DNA of 64,000 bases from Diplonema japonicum (lineage: Eukaryota; Protista; Euglenozoa: Diplonemea): contig OZ025649.1 in the NCBI GenBank assembly GCA_964019335.1, forward strand, positions 682,001 to 746,000. The letters run 5' to 3'. Shown here in pieces: positions 4,441 through 44,743 of this stretch. The notes beneath the pieces were generated by a model. The model worked only from the letters and a program-made list of their open reading frames with translations, did no database searches and was not told where the DNA came from. A program made the position numbers and the translations under genes. Numbering within the stretch: the first letter of the stretch is position 1; each line of letters starts with the position of its first letter.

Positions 4441-5613
4441 ATGTCGTACAGCAACCAGAGGATAGGGCTGGCCGTGGAGTACCTTACGTCTTCTAACCAC
4501 ACTGCAGCAGGATGCGCGTTGCATTTCTTCATGGTGGTGGAACAAGGGCGGAGAGCGGGGGGGAAACCCTCCAAGCGGATGATAGTACTAGTGGACCGCC
4601 CCACGTTCCTGGCAGAGGTGGACACGGCGATCCACAGGTGCGTGACAATGTCGAAGATAGAAACCATGTGCTTGTACGAAGAACACCTGCGGCCCATGAC
4701 GGGGCCCCTTACACAGTACGACGTGCTGCTGCAGGGGTCTGTGATGCTGGATTTCATCAGGACCATTGGGTCCGTCTTCAAACCAAACGATCCAGGTGTG
4801 GATGGCACTTTTTTTAAAAATTTATTTTACTATTTTTTTTTTTTTTTTTTTTTTTTTTTCGGTCGGGCCGTTGCTAACCACTTCGTTCCTATCATAGTGA
4901 ATTTTTTTTTTTTTTCAATCACAGCGAACCCCTGCCCGATGTATGAACTTGAAGAGAACCAGCCCCTTTCAGCGAGGGTGAACTGCAGGATCAGCACGGT
5001 GGCGCTGGATGACAGTTTCTCGCGGACGCAGTCTGAGGAGGTGTTGCGGCGGATTCGCGAGTCGAACTCGCGTGAGGTGTCGTCGCTGAAAGACGCGCTT
5101 CAGAGGCAGAAGGACGAACAACTGCAGGAGCTTGTTGACCTACACACGCAGAACGAACAGCTAAAGCACACTTTAGCACAGACTGAGAACTTGCTGATGG
5201 AGTCGAAGCGGAGCATCAAAGAACTTAATGCCAACCACCAGTCAGGGCACGATCCCCACCAGTCGATTATAACACCAGTTAAACAGTACCAGCCAGCAGG
5301 GCAGGCTCCGCAGAGCCCACTCGAGTACACACCTGGTCACAACCGGTATGCAGTAGGAAGCCCTGGCCCTGTCACAGTCGGTGGTGGTGGTGCGTCAATT
5401 AATATCTACCCTGCCGGCAATGGTCCTAGTGGTTCTAGCATCGAAGTGACGCATCCCCACCGTCCTGGCTACTCCGGGCCTGTGCGCTCTCCTGGATCCG
5501 TCTATGCCTCCCCCCGACCTTCCTCCCCCCGCCCTGGGGACATCCACCCAAGATATGCCTCCCCTCCAGGCAGCAGACCTCCAAGGGATTCCAAACCTTC
5601 TTGGAAGATGTAA
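4441..5613 (+). CDS. Hypothetical protein: N-terminal PH/TH1-like beta domain, coiled coil, Ser/Pro-rich tail; probable in-frame intron 4796-4924
   Basis: The ORF reads through a poly-T segment (poly-Phe) flanked by GT at 4796 and CACAG ending 4924; removal keeps the frame. Heptad region LKDALQRQK...LNAN follows. The domain call is tentative and this could be two genes. Confidence 0.5.
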   Translation: MSYSNQRIGLAVEYLTSSNHTAAGCALHFFMVVEQGRRAGGKPSKRMIVLVDRPTFLAEVDTAIHRCVTMSKIETMCLYEEHLRPMTGPLTQYDVLLQGSVMLDFIRTIGSVFKPNDPGVDGTFFKNLFYYFFFFFFFFFGRAVANHFVPIIVNFFFFSITANPCPMYELEENQPLSARVNCRISTVALDDSFSRTQSEEVLRRIRESNSREVSSLKDALQRQKDEQLQELVDLHTQNEQLKHTLAQTENLLMESKRSIKELNANHQSGHDPHQSIITPVKQYQPAGQAPQSPLEYTPGHNRYAVGSPGPVTVGGGGASINIYPAGNGPSGSSIEVTHPHRPGYSGPVRSPGSVYASPRPSSPRPGDIHPRYASPPGSRPPRDSKPSWKM

Positions 5614-5741: not shown

Positions 5742-6265
5742 TTTCTCTCCCGCTGTACGTATTACTAATTGTTAATTATTTTTTTTTTCTTAAGAAGTAG
5801 CAAAAGGGAAATTCCAAAGAAGCCTGCTTTGTCTCATCTTTTTTTCTGGTTCCCTTCTTTTTTTGTTTTGCTGGCTTTTTTTATTTTTAAAAGAAGGAAG
5901 GGAAAGAAAAAAGAAAAAAAAGAGAAAAGAATGGGCGAAAGAAAAAGAATGAAAAAAAAAGGGTGACTGCACCCTGTTTTTTTGTTTGTAGATGTTTTCT
6001 TATTTTTTTTTATATTTTTTTTTTTCAAAATGAAAACGGGATGAAGCCGCTGGACTATCCAGTGAGCGCGAAAAGAAAGAAAAACACAAAAAAAAGAAAC
6101 CGTTGTCTAAATTATATTTCGTTCCCTTCTGTAGGTGTATCCCTCCCCCCCCCCCCCCCCACCTTCCACTTTACTTGTCTAAAGATATTCCATGTCACAT
6201 CCACTACCCAGACTTTAAATATAAAAAGGAGAGGGGGGGGAAGAAAGAGTGGGAGAACAACGCAA

Positions 6266-7135
6266 ATGGATCCGTATCTAAGAGAGGCCAGCAGGTCACT
6301 GTCGAACACAGACATAGCGTTGGCTAACGCAGTGAAGTATATGAGTGATTTAAAAGTCAGTGGAATGGAGTCACCTGTAAGGTCCCCATTTAGAAGTGTC
6401 TCTGATGGGGTATCAGGAGCACAAATCGTGCGATCTTGTGAGGATGATACAAAGAGACTTTTACAGGAGTCCAGCGCGTTGAAGGCGTTGTTGTCAACTG
6501 GGATCCCAGAACCAGCACCGCACACACCAACCATTATACCTACTTTGATGGCCTCGCGCAACGAGGTCATATCAAAGACCATTGAGAATGCCATGTCAAT
6601 GATGCCCGGGTGGTCCAGGCCCGACCCATGTGGCTCAGACCCCCTTCTTAACGAAGCGCTTCTTGAGGCGCTTTGCGTACGAAACGAAAACGGCATGTGG
6701 ATCCCTGATCAGACTGTAATACACAATCGGCGCACTGCCCTCCGAGAAGCTTGGGAGGAACGCACAATAGAAAACATCAACAAGCTTTGCAAACAGGAAG
6801 TTTCTGCCAGGTTCGAAATCGAGAAAGCATGTGAATACGACTATGGCGGTCTAGAGAGGCTCGAAATGCAGACCAAGTCAGACAGGCTTGATTCCATCCT
6901 TGCCAGCGAAGCAGCACGAGGGAAGCAACGGCCCTTGCACCCGATCCCCTCCAACACCGTCGATACGCAGGACCTTACGAAATGGCTAATCGCCAAAAAG
7001 GGCTGGACGCCATACGATGCGGCTTCGTTCGCCAGCAAGCAGCGAATGGAAACAGACAACCCGCGCCCTCAGTGGGTTCGCATAGAAGAGCCCCTCCCAG
7101 ACGGCACGTGCATCGCCCGTTGGGTGCAACAGTGA
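6266..7135 (+). CDS. Hypothetical protein (MDPYLREAS...)
   Basis: Coding-like composition from the ATG at 6266; the upstream part of the ORF is homopolymer-rich spacer. Confidence 0.65.
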   Translation: MDPYLREASRSLSNTDIALANAVKYMSDLKVSGMESPVRSPFRSVSDGVSGAQIVRSCEDDTKRLLQESSALKALLSTGIPEPAPHTPTIIPTLMASRNEVISKTIENAMSMMPGWSRPDPCGSDPLLNEALLEALCVRNENGMWIPDQTVIHNRRTALREAWEERTIENINKLCKQEVSARFEIEKACEYDYGGLERLEMQTKSDRLDSILASEAARGKQRPLHPIPSNTVDTQDLTKWLIAKKGWTPYDAASFASKQRMETDNPRPQWVRIEEPLPDGTCIARWVQQ

Positions 7136-7359
7136 GGCACCATCATCGCTAGATACAATGTGTCCCCTTCCCACCTTTGTATATAACTTGTTTATTTCTT
7201 TCTTCTTTTTTTTTTTATTGGGAGCGAAAGATCGTGTAACGCTAGACGTATCCCTTCCATTGTTGTTTTCTCTTTTTTTTTTTTGTGAGATCTTGCGGCT
7301 GCTTGAAAGAACAATTCACTCACACTCTCTCCCCCCCCCGCTCAGGTCGCCGTCCCGAA

Positions 7360-8133
7360 ATGAGGAAAGGCACACGCATGAGGAACGTGGGTAGCGAGGC
7401 AGAGAAGAAAAGACTGGCAGACAAGATCGCTGCAGTGGAAAGCCAGATGGGGAAGACATCGGGAGGGTTCGACAGCGGGATCACGGGGTACAAGGCAGGG
7501 ACCAAGACGAAATGCAGCACGGGGGGGAAAGTGTGTGACAGCGCAAGGAAGAAGATCCACTCGGAGGAGGTGATTGTGCGGCGAGCGGATGGTGGAGTGA
7601 AGCTGGAGATCCTTCTAGAGCCTTGGAACGGCGCCCCGCCTGTGATGGTGCGGAGGGTTGTAGGGGCGAACCAAGCAGTGGTTCCTGCACTGCTGCAGAA
7701 CGGTGAAACAGTGGCGGTCCTTGAGGAGCCTGGGTGGCGTCTTAGGCATCAGGAATTCGTGAAGATCAACCGATGGGGGGACGAACCGTGCTCGGGGTAT
7801 ATCCAGAAGATCCACCTGGACTCTGTTTCCATGATTAAGCACAACAAGTCCTGGGTTCACACCAAAGCCAAGCCTGACCTGCTCCCCAACTCCAAGATGC
7901 TCCGTGAGGACATCATCAAGGACACCCGTGGCTACCCCAAACGCGACCTCCGTTGGGAGTGGAACGGCAAGACCCTCTCCTGTCCTGTCCGCCTCACCGA
8001 CGCTCGCGACACGCTCGACGGCCAGGTCATCGCGACACCACCAACTTACACAGATAAACGCCACTCCTCGGACTTGATCGCAGGTTTCCACCCCATGGCG
8101 CCCCCCAAGCAAGTGGTGGTTTGCCCCCGTTAG
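7360..8133 (+). CDS. Hypothetical protein, possible SH3-like central domain
   Basis: GC-rich ORF with strong GC3 bias. The segment LQNGETVAVLEE...FVKI...SGYIQKIHL resembles an SH3 fold pattern. Confidence 0.65.
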   Translation: MRKGTRMRNVGSEAEKKRLADKIAAVESQMGKTSGGFDSGITGYKAGTKTKCSTGGKVCDSARKKIHSEEVIVRRADGGVKLEILLEPWNGAPPVMVRRVVGANQAVVPALLQNGETVAVLEEPGWRLRHQEFVKINRWGDEPCSGYIQKIHLDSVSMIKHNKSWVHTKAKPDLLPNSKMLREDIIKDTRGYPKRDLRWEWNGKTLSCPVRLTDARDTLDGQVIATPPTYTDKRHSSDLIAGFHPMAPPKQVVVCPR

Positions 8134-8261
8134 CATTCTCTACGTTGCAATGATGCCATTCATGTGAACCTTGCAGACCTGACGTGACATGTTTTTTTTT
8201 TTTTCCCCGGTCGGGAGAAGTACTCTCCAACCTGCTGGGACGCTAGTAGGAGCCATTGAAG

Positions 8262-8330
8262 GGTGCCTCTCGCCTGATGAGGACAGCACCTGGAGGAGTC
8301 GCGAGATATGTCCGAAACTGAGAGATACCT
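8262..8330 (+). ncRNA. Structured RNA with a hammerhead ribozyme core (alternative reading: short box C/D RNA)
   Basis: CTGATGA 8274-8280; stem II GGACA 8281-8285/TGTCC 8309-8313; GAAA 8314-8317; stem I TCTCGC 8268-8273/GCGAGA 8301-8306 immediately after GTC 8298-8300; stem III ACT 8317-8319/AGT 8297-8299. Confidence 0.5.
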
Positions 8331-8568
8331 AGTACTCCCTTTTTAGGGCATGCGGCTTTCGTCTCAGGGAGCTTGCATGTTAATTTGAATTTTTTTTTTT
8401 TTTGCATTGTGTTGTACCTTGCCCATTCGCTTCAAACTGTACATGCCTTCGAAGTGAGCGCTTTTCTTCTTTATTTCCTCTTTTCTTGTTTTTTCTTTTC
8501 ACAATACTCTTCTCCGCAACAGCATATCTCAGGGGGCAAAAAGAAGCCAGACGACGACCCCCTGCATC

Positions 8569-10512
8569 ATGATGAAGGTCTGGCTTGTACTGGCGTGTGC
8601 AACTGTGTGCGCGTGTGAAGAGCTTGTGGGGTGGGGGTGCATGGGGGATGACTTAGAAGATGTTAACGCAAGGTGCGGTGCTGATATCAGCACGAAGAGC
8701 TGTGCAGAGTGGTGCGAGAAGACAGTAGGGTGCGCTGCGTGGGTGTACAGTACGGAAACGAAGTGCTGCGAGTTAAAGGCAGCTTGCAACACACGGCAAG
8801 CAGACGACATCTATGTGTCAGGCACCGTTGACATCCAGGACCTTTGGGACGCAGACTGTCCAGGTGAAGACATCTTCGTCAACGGTGTTTACCAAAAGAA
8901 GTGCGACATCACCCTCGACCACTGCCTACAGCGATGTGACACGACCGCTGGATGCGGCGCTGTGGTCCACAACTACGAAGAGAGCCCTTCCGGTGCCAAG
9001 GGGAAGTGGACAGACGGCTGTTGCTGGCTCAAAAAGTCCTGCACATCCCCCAAGAAGATGGATGGTAAACACGCTGTAGTGTTCCGACAAAAGGTTGAGA
9101 AGTTGAGCCTCTGGGACGCAGATTGCCCTGGCGAAGACGTCTTCATCAACGGCGTTTACCAGAAGAAATGCGACATCACCTTCGACCACTGCCTAGACAG
9201 GTGTGGAAGGACACCTGGTTGCAGCGCTGTCGTGTATAACTACGACGAGAACTACTCAGGCGACAAGGGGAAGTGGACAGACGGTTGCTGCTGGCTTAAG
9301 AAGTCCTGCAAGTCACCGAAGCCGATGGTGGGCAAGCACGCAGTTCTATTCCAGTTAAAACAACACCCCGAGCAAGGCCAGAAGGCAGAGGACGCGCAGC
9401 CAGTAAAGTTGCCGAAGAACGAATACGGGTCGGTGCAACTGACACAGCTCATCTTTGACCCACCGTTGGAATCTGATATCAAGAGCACGACAGCTCCCCA
9501 GGGAGAGAGCCCGCAAGGTGAAGGACCAGAGAAGCTGTTCGACAACAAGCACGACACTAAGTGGGTCGACTTTAGGTATGAATCTCTGTATATGCTAAGT
9601 CACACAGACACGCACCCGTGATCATAGAGCTGAACCGTGCAGTTGATGTACAATCGTACAAGTTGGTGATGGGAAACGACTCACCGGAACGCGACCCGAT
9701 GGCTTGGAGGCTTTCGGGGTCAGAGAACGGGGTAGTGTGGGAGGAAATGTCCGAGGTGACGGAGGACGTGGGCATTGCAAGGCTCTCGGAGTCGAAAGCT
9801 TATGAGACGAAAGGGTCTTGGAAGTGGCTCAAATTTGAGGTTCTTTCCATCAGAGCACAGCCGGGCAAGGTGAAGGCAGTGTCGGTGGAAGCCACTGTCA
9901 TCGATGGCATTGCGTGTGAAGGCGGCGATCTTGTTGTCAACGGATACTACCAAAGGGCATGCGGGATAGAGGAGTCGATGTGCCGGATGGTGTGCAGCAG
10001 GACGCTGTCGTGTTCCCTCTACACGTACGAGCTGGAGACGAAGTGCTGTGCTTTGAAAACGTCGTGCAGTGACCACCGGGAGCAATACGGGCGACACGTG
10101 TACATCGTGCGTCACACCCACTACCCGCAGCAGTACCCTGGCGGCAGATCGCCTGTCGAAACGATGAAAGACGCAATGGAGGGGCACGACCTCAATGACG
10201 TCAAGGAGGTCTTAGACCTACTGTCGAAGGTGTGCAACACAGTACCCCCAGTTACAATACTCAGGACCACGATCACGACGAGGTGATGAAGGCCGTTCTA
10301 GAATGGGCCGAGAGGGAAGAAGAAGACCTCCTCAACGCCAGCGAAGAGACCGAAAAAGAAACAGACTTTGTGCTGCCGTGGTTCGCACTGCCGAGGTACA
10401 TTCCTTTCTTTAAATTCATTATTGAGAAGAAACTCCCTTTTTTTACAGGAAGCAAGCGCCCCGTGATCTGAATGTAATGCTACAAGAGCTTGAGATGCCA
10501 AGGAGGAACTAG
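8569..10512 (+). CDS. Secreted PAN/apple-domain protein with an F5/8-type C (discoidin/CBM32-like) domain; introns 9576-9607, 10230-10264, probably 10396-10448
   Basis: Signal peptide MMKVWLVLACATVCA. Four C..C....GC.A..Y....CC.LK apple repeats. EKLFD...TKWVDF...SYKL...NDSPERDPMAWRLSGSENG discoidin-like motif. GT-AG introns join the ORFs in frame. Confidence 0.8.
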
Positions 10513-15970: not shown

Positions 15971-16746
15971 TTCTCATTCTTTTTCGAGGCATCGGTATCT
16001 AAGCCGTAGCCAACATGTCTCTTGACATGTCTTATTTCTTCCTAAAAACTATTCGTTTAACGCAGTTTGTACCCTTTTTTTTATAGAGTTGAAGAAGAAA
16101 GGGATGGGGAGTGCTGAGGGATAGGGAGTGCTTGTGCCGACTCTTGAACAAACGCTTTTTCACTTTCCGTGCGTGAGCACGCTGAAAGGGAAGTGTAGCG
16201 AGGGGGAGCAGGAGAATTGGCTTTTTAAGGGTGGTCCTCACGTTGGGAGATGCCCTTAAGTATCGCGTTTTCTTTCTTTTTCTGTTTTGTTCCCTTCACA
16301 ATTGCTGTTTCCCCTCTCTCGTCAAGTTTAGTATTATGTTTCTTTTTTTTTACCCCCCTACTGGGAAGCCGTTTAAAAGGTGCCTCTTGCCTGAAGAGGC
16401 CAACCCCCGGCATATCGTGAGATATGACCGAAGCGAGGTAATTTCCCTCACCATTACTTCTTCTTTCTGATTTTTGTTCCCCAAGGTTCCCCCAGGGGCC
16501 CGCAACGTATTCGGATTTCAAGGCAATTGCTGCCTAGAAAATGGTACACCAGGTACTGGGCTGTTATCTATGTATATCATGCGAGCTGTTATTTGTCTCC
16601 TTGATTTTTTTTTTTTTTTTTGCACTCTGAGTGTGTAGCAAGCCCTCTGGTTTTTTTTACCTTGATGATCTGTGTCCACCCCTTAGGTTACTGGTTAAGG
16701 ACACGAAGAGACCACGAAGAGTCAGGCTTTGAAAAAAAGAAATTAA

Positions 16747-18530
16747 CCCATAAAGGACCGCTATTTTTCGTCTAAAAAGTCGATTTTGAACTTTTCGTTC
16801 AATACCAAAATAAAATGGCGAGGGTGGAGTTAGAGGGTGTGTACCTATATTATTTTCACTACCCCATTTCTGGAGCGCGAAGCGGCCTGCATTTCAGCCC
16901 CAGACGCGCCCAAACTTTGGTGGTAGAGCAGCATTTGAGAGAAACAACTCTTGCAAAGGGCACATGCTATCTGGAGGTTCCATGGTTTCGGCAAGCAGCG
17001 CTTATTCAGCGTGCAGAGTGGGCTGGTTATTTTTTTTTCACCACTTATGGCCGTTCTTTGAACATAAGGTCCGAGGTGCCGCAGATATGCGACTTGTCCA
17101 ATTTAAACGTATTTCTATATTCAAGTGGTTTTCAAGAGGTTTTCAGGTGGTTTTTTAAGGTGTCGTTAATGTGAAAAAATTCGAAACAGGGCACATTGCT
17201 ACGTTGCAATCTCTGCACGAGAACATGGCCTGGGTGCGTTTTTTCTCTAATTTGTTGCACACAGTGCAATTCCGTGCCTTTTGCATCTTTTCAAGACACA
17301 TTAAAGGTGCACCCTTGGCACGTGAAGGTGCACCCTTGGTACGTGAAGGTGCACCCTTGGCACGTGAAGGTGCACCCTGAGGGGTAGGTATCTCAGGCTC
17401 CGGCGGGGAACACTTGATGTGGGTGCCACCCTTTTGCGATGATGTTGTTTGACAAGATTTCTTTGCCACACACTTGCTGACACTGAATGGGTATTCTGGG
17501 AGCAATTTCCGGGTTTTCCTGATGGTCCCCATGCAGTGGAAATCTGCATTGTAAATCCGTATCAACAATGGTACAAGCGAAAGCAGTTGTCAAAGACAAT
17601 CCAGTAATTCTGGTGCTGATATTCGGTGAGCTCTGCCTCTTTCCTCCGGGTGCCCGCGCCGGTACAAACAATCATGTTTAGAGTGTAACCGGTGTCTGAT
17701 TTGCATTTTGAACCCATAACGCTTCCTCTTCTTCGGCTCATAAACAATGAACCCGACACGGCTTCTACAGCGTATGATGGTTCATCCACAGCAAGGTTTC
17801 GCTTGGGTACATACAGGGATGACCAAGAAGGAACCACAAGATTTATAAGATTGCGCCCGTTAGCCATTCTGTCTCCTTCTCCTCCACCAAGGGGCAACCC
17901 AAACCGCATTTAGCGCATTATTTTTAGGAGCCTGTTTCTTTCCATTACCGTTCTGAAATATTGTGAATATGGGGTATCTGTGAGTTCATCCTGTGCCCAG
18001 TAGACCTTAATATCTGTCTTGATTATGAGCCCTGTAAGTATCCAAAGGCCTCTATACCACTCGAATGGCTTGCTGCCCACCCCACGATAGCCTTTTAGAG
18101 CCGCAGGAGTGAAAAACAACTCAAGGTACAGGACAAGCCCCCTGCTGGAGGGCCGCCCTATCAAAAACAAAGGGAAAACCTCCAGCCCGTTGAGACCCAC
18201 TACTGGTACACTTGGACCTGGTACCTTGCGAAATATCTTCCTCCCCACCTTCTCGATTTTGTCATCCCATTCCATATCCGGGATATCCCCATCATCCGGT
18301 GACACTGACCCTTCTTCAGAAGTACTTTCGGCACTACTCCTTATGGGGTGTAAAAAAAAAACAATGTCTGTGCCACTATTTTTTTTCTCCCCTTGCAGTT
18401 TGGATGCAAAAATTTACGGGCGATATAGCGTCAGTATAAAAAAAGTCGCGCAATAAGGCCCCTCTTTAAAGAGTGGGCATGCAGAGCACTAAAAATGCCT
18501 TAGCAGAATTTAAAAAAGTTTTTTTTTGGG
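16747..18530 (-). mobile_element. Degenerate piggyBac transposon (frameshifted transposase)
   Basis: Left end TTAA|CCCATAAAGGACC at 16743-16759. Minus-strand fragments LELFFT, TP...FRTVMERNR..KIMR, LAVDE, DTGYTLNM, VFDN, CMGTIRK and a Cys-rich CTVC...CRDCNVAMC. The right end (TGGG|TTAA, 18527-18534) is only weakly supported. Confidence 0.8.
17304..17378. repeat. 21-bp minisatellite, about 3.6 copies (AAGGTGCACCCTTGG[C/T]ACGTG), inside the piggyBac remnant
   Basis: Directly visible tandem copies. Confidence 0.95.
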
Positions 18531-18661
18531 TTAAAAAAAAAAAAAAAGAAGAAGAATAAAAAGACTTTTCAGCTGGGCAGAAAGAAAGGGTGGACCTTAT
18601 GATAGATCTTGTAAGAACGAATCTCGCGGTTTGAAACCCCTTTGTTTTCTGAAAGGTTTTT

Positions 18662-18665
<4 letters not shown>

Positions 18666-18723
<58 letters not shown>
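18666..18723 (+). repeat. Long poly-T tract
   Basis: Uninterrupted T run; one of many intergenic homopolymers. Confidence 0.9.
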
Positions 18724-18725
<2 letters not shown>

Positions 18726-19691
18726 TTCCTCCTCTCCCGCTCTCTCTCTCTGTGTTTCCCTAAAAAAACACTACTCCGTATTCATGAATTACGCCCCTGT
18801 TAAGTTGCTTTTAAAAGAACTCTGGCGGCGATAGCATGTTAAGAGTTGAAGAGGGATTTAAAAAAGAAAAAAGAAAAAAAAAAGACGGGGGGGAAAGGGA
18901 GAAAATAAAATAAAAAGAAAGCGATAGTTAGAATCAAAATGTGCGTCTTTTTAAAGGTTTTTTTTGGGGGGGGGTTTTCCCTTAAGCTTTGCCTGTTTTT
19001 TTTCTTCTTCTATGTGTGTGTCGAAACACGCCTGCTTTACTTTTTATTTTATTTTTTTTTTTACACAGCACCACTTGTGGCCAATTGTTCACAATTTATT
19101 TTTACCCCTTTTCTCTCCTCGGTCTCCTTTTTCTTCTTTTTTTTTTCTTCCATCCGTTCATCGGTTTATTAATTTGTTACGTTGCAATCTGGGGTGGGGG
19201 GGGGTAGACTTCTTTCTCGACACTTTCTCTCGGAGGCCCTCTCTTTTTTTCTTTATTTATAAGGTTCGATCAAGAGATAGATTGAGACTCTTCAGGCGTC
19301 CTGCCACATACCGCAGGTACCCTTAAATGTCTCTTTTTTTTTTTTTTTTTTTTTTTTTTTATTTTCTTTCCTGTCCCTAGTCGTGGCAGCTTTCTCGTTC
19401 TTAATGCAGTGAAGGAAGATAAAAAAAAAAGGGGGAACAACGGGTGAATTGCAACATTTATCACCACTTTTTATGTTCCTTTCCTTTTCTTTCCAACAAA
19501 TTTGTTACAATGAAGAGAATAAAAAGTTTGTGTATCTCCATTTAATCTGTCGACGGCAGGAAGAAAAAAAGTAAAAAGAAAAAGGGGGGGAAGAAAAGGG
19601 AGCAGAAAGAGAACGTGGTAAACAACGCAGCGAGATAAGAAAAGAAGAAAAAAATAGAAAACAAGGAAACGAAGTAGAAAAAACCTGTTCT

Positions 19692-19728
<37 letters not shown>

Positions 19729-19772
19729 TGGTTCCATATCTCCCAGCACCCATCCAATTTTTGTTCTTCTTC

Positions 19773-19803
<31 letters not shown>

Positions 19804-20149
19804 TTTTTTTTTATATTTTTCCCTTTTGGGTTAGGTGTAGAAAAAGAAAAAAAAGAAAGAAGAAGAAAAAAGAGGGAGATGCGCTCTGTACTGTTTAATT
19901 CCTTTAATGGGTGTCGTTGCTTGCTTCATCCCCCATCATAACGAATTATTTTCTTCTTCCCTTCGTTAAGCAAGCGGCTTTTTTTTCTTCTTCTTCTTTT
20001 TTTTTTTTCCTATTTGTAATTCGGATCGTGCCTTTTTATTTCCCATTTTTTTTTTTTTTTTGTTGTTGTTCACCTTACCTCCTGTTTCTTCGTTATTACT
20101 GCACCTCCGTTTGTTTTTTTTAAAGAAAGAAAGTGGGGGGTGAAAGAAA

Positions 20150-44520: not shown

Positions 44521-44592
44521 GCTCCTATGGTGTAGTGGTTAGCACTCTGGACCTTGAATCCAGCAGCCTGGGTTCAAACCCCAGTGGGAGTG
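44521..44592 (+). tRNA. tRNA-Gln(TTG) with atypical C33
   Basis: Acceptor GCTCCTA/TGGGAGT; D arm with TAGTGGTTAG; anticodon stem CTGGA/TCCAG, loop CCTTGAA; T arm CTGGG-TTCAAAC-CCCAG; T5 terminator follows. Confidence 0.88.
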
Positions 44593-44669: not shown

Positions 44670-44743
44670 GGCGCCTTAGCTCAGTTGGTTAGAGCGCACG
44701 CCTAGTAAGCGTGAGGTCGAGGGTTCAAATCCCTCAGGTGCCT
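44670..44743 (+). tRNA. tRNA-Thr(AGT)
   Basis: Canonical cloverleaf: GGCGCCT/AGGTGCC, GCTC/GAGC, CACGC-CTAGTAA-GCGTG, GAGGG-TTCAAAT-CCCTC; poly-T terminator. Confidence 0.97.

Follow-up and report, generated by a model that had tools for sequence, protein, structure and literature searches.

Hammerhead ribozymes are the best-studied small ribozymes, and reviews list only three forms, types I, II and III, which are circular permutations of one another (PMC6155905, PMC3088659). Their catalytic core comprises CUGANGA, GAA, the pairs A15.1-U16.1 and G10.1-C11.1, and a GUH cleavage site, and three helices surround the junction. Natural hammerheads hold the far ends of stems I and II side by side through loop-loop contacts, or through a Watson-Crick pseudoknot in about 40% of cases, and they are sensitive to stem length (PMC3088659, PMC6155905). 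Several hammerheads are carried by repeats or retroelements. The Schistosoma Sm-alpha repeat, with a type I hammerhead, and the metazoan or plant retrozymes are short, non-coding and highly repeated elements transcribed by read-through (PMC6155905, PMC7761336). They have canonical type I or III topology and tend to be tandem, producing unit-length and circular RNAs. The minimal type I hammerheads of Penelope-like elements and Terminons lack helix III and tertiary contacts, sit in pseudo-LTRs, have an unknown role, and some act only as dimers (PMC7761336). HDV-like ribozymes lie at the 5' end of L1Tc/NARTc of Trypanosoma cruzi, R2 and RTE elements. In T. cruzi, the carriers are retroposons of a euglenozoan that transcribes its genes in long clusters, and the cut lies at the first base, so the whole element survives. 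The discontinuous hammerhead in mammalian CLEC2 3'UTRs (Martick et al. 2008) reportedly has an unusual arrangement of strands within a host transcript, in an order that is still compatible with the known types but contains a very long insertion.

Here, we describe a motif in a 64,000-nt stretch of the Diplonema japonicum genome (contig OZ025649.1, positions 682,001 to 746,000; hereafter the window, numbered from its first letter) that carries every core base of a hammerhead, with its three stems wired in an order for which we found no reported precedent. An earlier note on this sequence had listed a complete hammerhead core with the cleavage strand inside the stem II loop, and all of its listed bases are present on the + strand. 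Stem I is formed by UCUCGC (8268–8273, hammerhead positions 2.6–2.1) and GCGAGA (8301–8306, 1.1–1.6). The core segment C3-U4-G5-A6-N7-G8-A9 follows directly (8274–8280), reading CUGAUGA in the window and CUGAAGA in most copies. Stem II pairs GGACA (8281–8285, 10.1–10.5) with UGUCC (8309–8313, 11.5–11.1) around a 23-nt loop (8286–8308). Within this loop, an 11-nt, nearly invariant linker a (GCACCUGGAGG, 8286–8296) leads from the far end of stem II to the far end of stem III, followed by the stem III strand AGU (16.3–16.1) and C17 at 8297–8300, with the predicted cut between 8300 and 8301. Linker b (UA, 8307–8308) joins the far ends of stems I and II, and measures 1–2 nt with a 5-bp stem II or 2–4 nt if stem II is read as 4 bp. 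The core G12-A13-A14 and the other stem III strand, ACU (15.1–15.3), occupy 8314–8319. The resulting order, I5'-II5'-III5'-I3'-II3'-III3', is what the sequence encodes. No circular permutation gives this order, and all three helices would cross each other. In addition, GGUGC (8262–8266) could pair with GCACC (8286–8290) and tie the far ends of stems I and II into a second three-way junction. This helix is inferred only, since its sequence is conserved and the only change is C8290 to U, giving G-U. A competing hairpin is also present, in which 8261–8272 pairs with 8319–8330, excluding stems I and III.

Searching the window with Rfam, which holds the models Hammerhead_1, Hammerhead_II, Hammerhead_3, HH9 and HH10, returned no hammerhead match at the gathering score or at E up to 10, as expected because those models cannot represent this strand order. 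Canonical type I or III readings that use the element's 5' end (GGUC|GGG) or downstream GUC sites were rejected by inspection, because the registers do not pair. We also could not fold the head as an HDV-like ribozyme, since the only partner for its 5' end lies 120 nt away. In the literature searched, we found neither a fourth hammerhead type nor a natural euglenozoan hammerhead.

The motif is not a unique intergenic signal. It is the conserved head of a SINE-like retroposon of about 196 nt (GGTCGGG...TTAATTTGAA), whose window copy occupies 8209–8389 on the + strand. A 106-nt query found 40 scored copies out of 201 candidates, at 87–98% identity, on many contigs of the 62.5-Mb genome, and a wider query defined the unit. 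An exact pattern for the core with free stems hit 72 places against 0 for the reversed control, a covariance model gave at least 150 hits, and a motif just downstream of the fold hit 137 places against 3. The genome thus holds at least 150 copies, probably up to about 300. The covariance-model search for deeply divergent relatives returned only decayed copies of the same subfamilies. One lone old and decayed copy lies in the window itself at 16366–16452 (+), where CUGAAGA and stem I are kept, position 15.1 is G, and stem III is lost. A weak model hit on the minus strand at 19245–19333 (E 0.53) is probably chance; it lies in a region (18001–20000) where GC drops sharply to 0.37, against about 0.50 for the rest of the window. 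A scan of marine and other metagenomes with free stems reported at least 120 matching stretches, and none of the 80 loci listed is homologous to the element. One of these loci came from a human-gut metagenome assembly and was screened only in bulk. We first considered the repeat to be SIRE of T. cruzi, and this identity was dropped because the gene content did not fit a trypanosomatid.

The copies show SINE architecture. They are short, non-coding and dispersed, with target-site duplications of variable length (copies are numbered with L; TTTAAAG in L023, ttattgtttc in L009), sometimes a short A-tail (L015, L018), T-rich insertion sites between genes and many 5' truncations. In the window, a T-run plus CCCC at 8192–8208 and the T-run at 8390–8403 form the probable T-rich target-site duplication. 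Compared with the family, the window copy lacks 15 nt after 8336 (element positions 129–143), and a contig of one RNA run, X2, carries the missing letters. About a third of the copies (for example L036 at 1416–1500, L038 and L040) carry an extra 5' module of about 79 nt (CCGTCCCCCCCACCCGCGCAGGAGCC...GGAGACCGT) joined directly to GGTCGGG. The head of about 130 nt is shared by subfamilies with at least three alternative 3' tails. The tail in the window, type T1 (8337–8389, ...GCATGTTAATTTGAA), is the probable recognition end for a reverse transcriptase. A search for the autonomous partner through this tail did not identify one and returned mostly tail-only copies: about 40% of the listed sites of the tail motif TTGCATGTTAATTTGA are tail-only insertions of about 50 nt, and in a sample of 20 sites (L272–L291), 14 begin at element position 146–148, just after the CCCTTTTT run. 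This may be either a preferred stop for the reverse transcriptase or a separate mini-element. No tRNA, SRP or 5S match was found by Rfam in the head, and the only promoter-like feature is an imperfect B-box-like CGAAAC. Most copies are solitary, whereas a few places hold two copies head to tail or a few hundred bases apart (contig C27 at 419319–419806, C12 at 106543–107172, C81 at 64597–64741). A retrozyme-like tandem mechanism is therefore unlikely but not excluded for these loci.

The flanking long ORFs, 7285–8133 and 8569–9621 (the latter with PAN domains), lie on the + strand. Among 74 long ORFs flanking 51 copies, 66 are on the strand of the element, and the sense strand of the motif is therefore co-transcribed with host genes, which lie in same-strand arrays with T-rich spacers. 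Gene clusters and trans-splicing are described for diplonemids (PMC10161547). Insertion into sense-strand T-tracts would explain the bias. The repeat is present in RNA runs, including an oligo-dT seawater metatranscriptome. These runs are genuine RNA, since contigs of two of them (X1, X3) splice out a 32-nt GT..AG intron at 9574–9605, joining the ORFs 8569–9621 and 9618–10286 into one gene, a very short cis-intron in a genome that otherwise looks intron-poor. As assembled contigs, however, they show only the presence of the repeat and not the ends of molecules.

Five subfamilies (A to E) provide a natural mutagenesis experiment on the fold. The earlier note had held that a lack of covariation in homologues would count against it, and we found the opposite for stems I and II. 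On an alignment of 67 sequences, 93.4% of cells are paired in the hammerhead pairing, against 24–48% when the partners are slid by 1–3 columns. Meanwhile, 51 cells are changed on both sides, against 20.7 ± 3.0 in shuffles (0 of 500 reach it), and the covariation score is 0.180 against 0.097. Three pairs switch between Watson-Crick states: 8271–8303 in stem I (C-G in 36 and U-A in 16 distinct rows), and 8282–8312 (G-C in 43, A-U in 12) and 8283–8311 (A-U in 27, U-A in 21) in stem II. The fifth pair of stem II is lost in two subfamilies.

Because copies of a repeat are related, we counted events instead of rows. All four combinations of stem I and stem II states occur as multi-copy subfamilies, even though the paired sites are interleaved along the sequence. 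Characters outside the stems group D with E, and A with B and C, so that the U-A state of stem I arose at least twice. That makes at least four compensatory double substitutions. In contrast, the rival hairpin is 96.7% paired but has no change on both sides and is indistinguishable from shuffles, its variation being C to U opposite G. A third possible partner of 8268–8273, the element's own 5' end (8210–8216), behaves the same way and shows no compensatory change. The 3-bp ACU/AGU helix of stem III is 98% kept, but it is invariant and so offers no covariation, and alone it is not stable (+1.9 kcal/mol).

Thirteen positions in 8262–8330 differ between the majorities of the five subfamilies. Six form the three compensated pairs, one is the dispensable fifth pair of stem II, one is N7, one is H17, two lie in linkers and two in flanks. 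None is in the nine invariant core bases, stem III or G10.1-C11.1. Only N7 (A in 52, T in 22 and C in 1) and H17 (C in 57 and U in 17 copies, never G or A) vary in the core between subfamilies, and these are the two positions that hammerheads leave free. This is the pattern expected of a hammerhead, although the invariance of the core alone is only weakly significant (roughly p = 0.04–0.09). The stronger argument is joint: a pseudoknot whose reality is shown independently has, at its junction and in the right register, every constrained hammerhead base and a GUH site, a coincidence that we estimate from base frequencies at about 1e-7 per pseudoknot.

The analysis thus establishes that the head of a sense-transcribed SINE folds into a pseudoknot in which 8268–8273 pairs with 8301–8306 and 8281–8285 with 8309–8313, that selection has maintained these two helices in the source elements, and that all invariant hammerhead bases, a GUC/GUU site and a predicted 3-bp stem III lie in the correct places around their junction. 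What we infer from this, at even odds or slightly better, is catalysis: a hammerhead ribozyme whose substrate strand has moved into loop II, and which would work like, and probably derives from, a hammerhead. In this view, a 2–4-nt strand (with a 4-bp stem II) ties the far ends of stems I and II covalently, where ordinary hammerheads rely on loop-loop contacts. The RNA would cut in cis after C8300 by the usual attack of the 2'-OH, leaving a 2',3'-cyclic phosphate and a 5'-OH, and the competing hairpin would hold it in an inactive form. All 14 base pairs would continue to hold the two halves together after the cut, favouring religation, which is efficient in full-length hammerheads (PMC6155905), and this could explain why genomic copies contain both halves. 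For the element, the cut could limit or time its RNA, or allow reversible cleavage and ligation. The geometry, argued from the sequence alone, is plausible, since stem I has 6 bp and stem II 4–5 bp, the link between their far ends is 2–4 nt (with a 4-bp stem II) in all subfamilies, and the 11-nt linker a can span stem II, the core and stem III.

The observation of the earlier note is confirmed in every base, and the motif is more than chance. Its interpretation, a pseudoknotted or dimer-forming hammerhead cleaving after C8300 that might process a polycistronic pre-mRNA between two same-strand genes, is only partly supported. The complete core, the unusual connectivity and the exact register of stems I and II hold, whereas cleavage remains a prediction. 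A locus-specific device for processing this polycistron does not hold, because this copy is one insertion among a few hundred of a retroposon family.

No genomic signature of the cut was found, and copy starts and deletion breakpoints are neutral to slightly negative as evidence for it. If the 3' product were a common template, copies should begin at element position 93. However, none of about 16 true 5'-truncated copies does so; they begin at 56, 58, 71, 81, 83, 95, 95, 98, ~99, 103, 104, 105, 114, 114, 120 and 120. The cluster at 95–105 could equally reflect stalling of reverse transcriptase at the fold, or the usual 3' bias of truncations. We further asked whether reverse transcription across a cut leaves deletion scars, and breakpoints are not enriched at the site (about 12 in positions 91–95 against about 9 expected). 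We notice that two identical copies 5.8 kb apart (L231 and L232, contig C101 at 291532 and 297334) are replaced by unrelated sequence right after GAGTCGC, 2 nt past the predicted cut, but this is one event inside a local duplication and is not significant on its own. The folding energy of the region is ordinary (z = -0.75). Nearest-neighbour energies favour the rival hairpin plus stem II (-17.8 kcal/mol; MFE -21.4) over the hammerhead stems (-6.6, -5.2 and +1.9 taken singly). Nested models never predict stem I, and pair UCUCGC with 8319–8324 (P about 0.97) or with the element's 5' end. Prefix folding does not give a simple kinetic window. These models ignore pseudoknots, Mg2+ and tertiary structure. 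A cut in the middle of a retroposon also has no obvious benefit.

The alternative that survives best, though we consider it unlikely, is a non-catalytic pseudoknot kept for another reason, such as binding the partner reverse transcriptase or a host protein, RNA stability, or nuclear retention, with the hammerhead-like core being a relic of a former ribozyme or a coincidence. Covariation proves pairing and not catalysis, the genomic copies carry no mark of the cut, energy models favour other folds, and linker a and GGUGC are as conserved as the core, so that conservation is not specific to catalytic bases. On the other hand, all 13 constrained hammerhead positions, the GUH site and the register of three helices would have to coincide with a real pseudoknot by chance, and the core positions that commonly vary are the two left free in hammerheads.

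A hammerhead acting between molecules or as a dimer is more doubtful. Here, the enzyme arms (UCUCGC and ACU) of one transcript would bind the loop II substrate (AGUC/GCGAGA) of another copy's transcript, so that cutting would depend on concentration and act across the family. The enzyme strand on its own has the classic trans-acting layout, dimeric action is known for newt, viroid and Penelope-type hammerheads (PMC6155905, PMC7761336), a few hundred copies are co-transcribed, and the tight 2-nt link is avoided. However, the arms and the substrate covary within each copy while subfamilies with different stem I states coexist, which fits a cis partner best. The predicted lowest-energy dimer uses the rival pairing instead of the hammerhead arms, and a 3-bp stem III is weak for binding in trans.

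Very unlikely is the reading of CGAAAC and nearby bases as an internal RNA polymerase III promoter, with the rest as ordinary SINE sequence and the stems incidental. GATCGAAAC in subfamily C fits the B-box consensus GWTCRANNC, and copies often end before a T-run. Nevertheless, the A and B subfamilies have GTCCGA/GACCGA, which break the TC of the B box, no A box was found, and the T-runs are target duplications and not part of the element (L023, L009). Co-transcription with host genes removes the need for a promoter, and this reading does not explain the compensatory changes. The least likely reading is a C/D box snoRNA or a repeat derived from one, since, although UGAUGA (8275–8280), CUGA (8318–8321) and a terminal stem (8262–8269/8322–8329, 97% kept) are present in the window copy, 52 of 76 copies have CUGAAGA, which breaks box C, the would-be guide covaries with 8281–8285 instead of being fixed on a target, its best complementarity to the rRNA of this genome is 9 nt and is matched by 57 of 300 shuffles, the 37 nt between the boxes is too short, and there is no Rfam snoRNA hit.

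Compared with types I to III, the head has the identical catalytic core, stems I and II and a predicted stem III in the same register, with stem I about 2 bp longer than stem II and the far ends of these two stems likewise predicted to be held together, and differs in strand order and in the predicted covalent link. Compared with the Sm-alpha repeat and retrozymes, its copies are mostly dispersed singles bounded by target duplications, with the predicted cut in the middle of the unit. We found no link to a Penelope-like element, and a GIY-YIG search of the genome gave one, probably cellular, gene. Unlike the HDV-like ribozymes of L1Tc/NARTc, a cut here would split the element, and unlike the CLEC2 hammerhead, its strands are re-ordered.

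We tentatively propose, at less than even odds, a fourth natural hammerhead architecture, active in cis, toggled by the competing hairpin, possibly also tied by the second three-way junction, and carried by a SINE family in a diplonemid. It would be the first natural hammerhead reported in Euglenozoa. Search tools such as Rfam models and RNAMotif descriptors assume one of the three circular permutations, so if this fold cleaves, they are blind to a whole class and the census of ribozymes in genomes is incomplete. It would also be a natural experiment in RNA architecture, in which a covalent tie would replace the loop-loop contacts that prime the active site. An active fold would also add a second ribozyme class to the retroposons of organisms that transcribe genes in long clusters, where elements without promoters depend on RNA processing. 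Even if inactive, the family is a clean, naturally mutagenised example of a selected pseudoknot in a SINE head.

Elsewhere in the window, two tandem 390-aa ORFs on the + strand (4441–5613 and 5963–7135) have no Pfam match and are probably a recent tandem gene duplication. Two tRNA genes (44521–44592 and 44670–44743) lie 78 nt apart on the + strand, inside a protein-coding gene array. On contig C119 (L269, L270), the rDNA unit repeats every 6825 bp, and separate SSU rRNA fragments of 260–590 nt are scattered on other contigs (C37, C78, C80, C18, C34), recalling the dispersed rRNA pieces described for Diplonema papillatum (PMC10161547).
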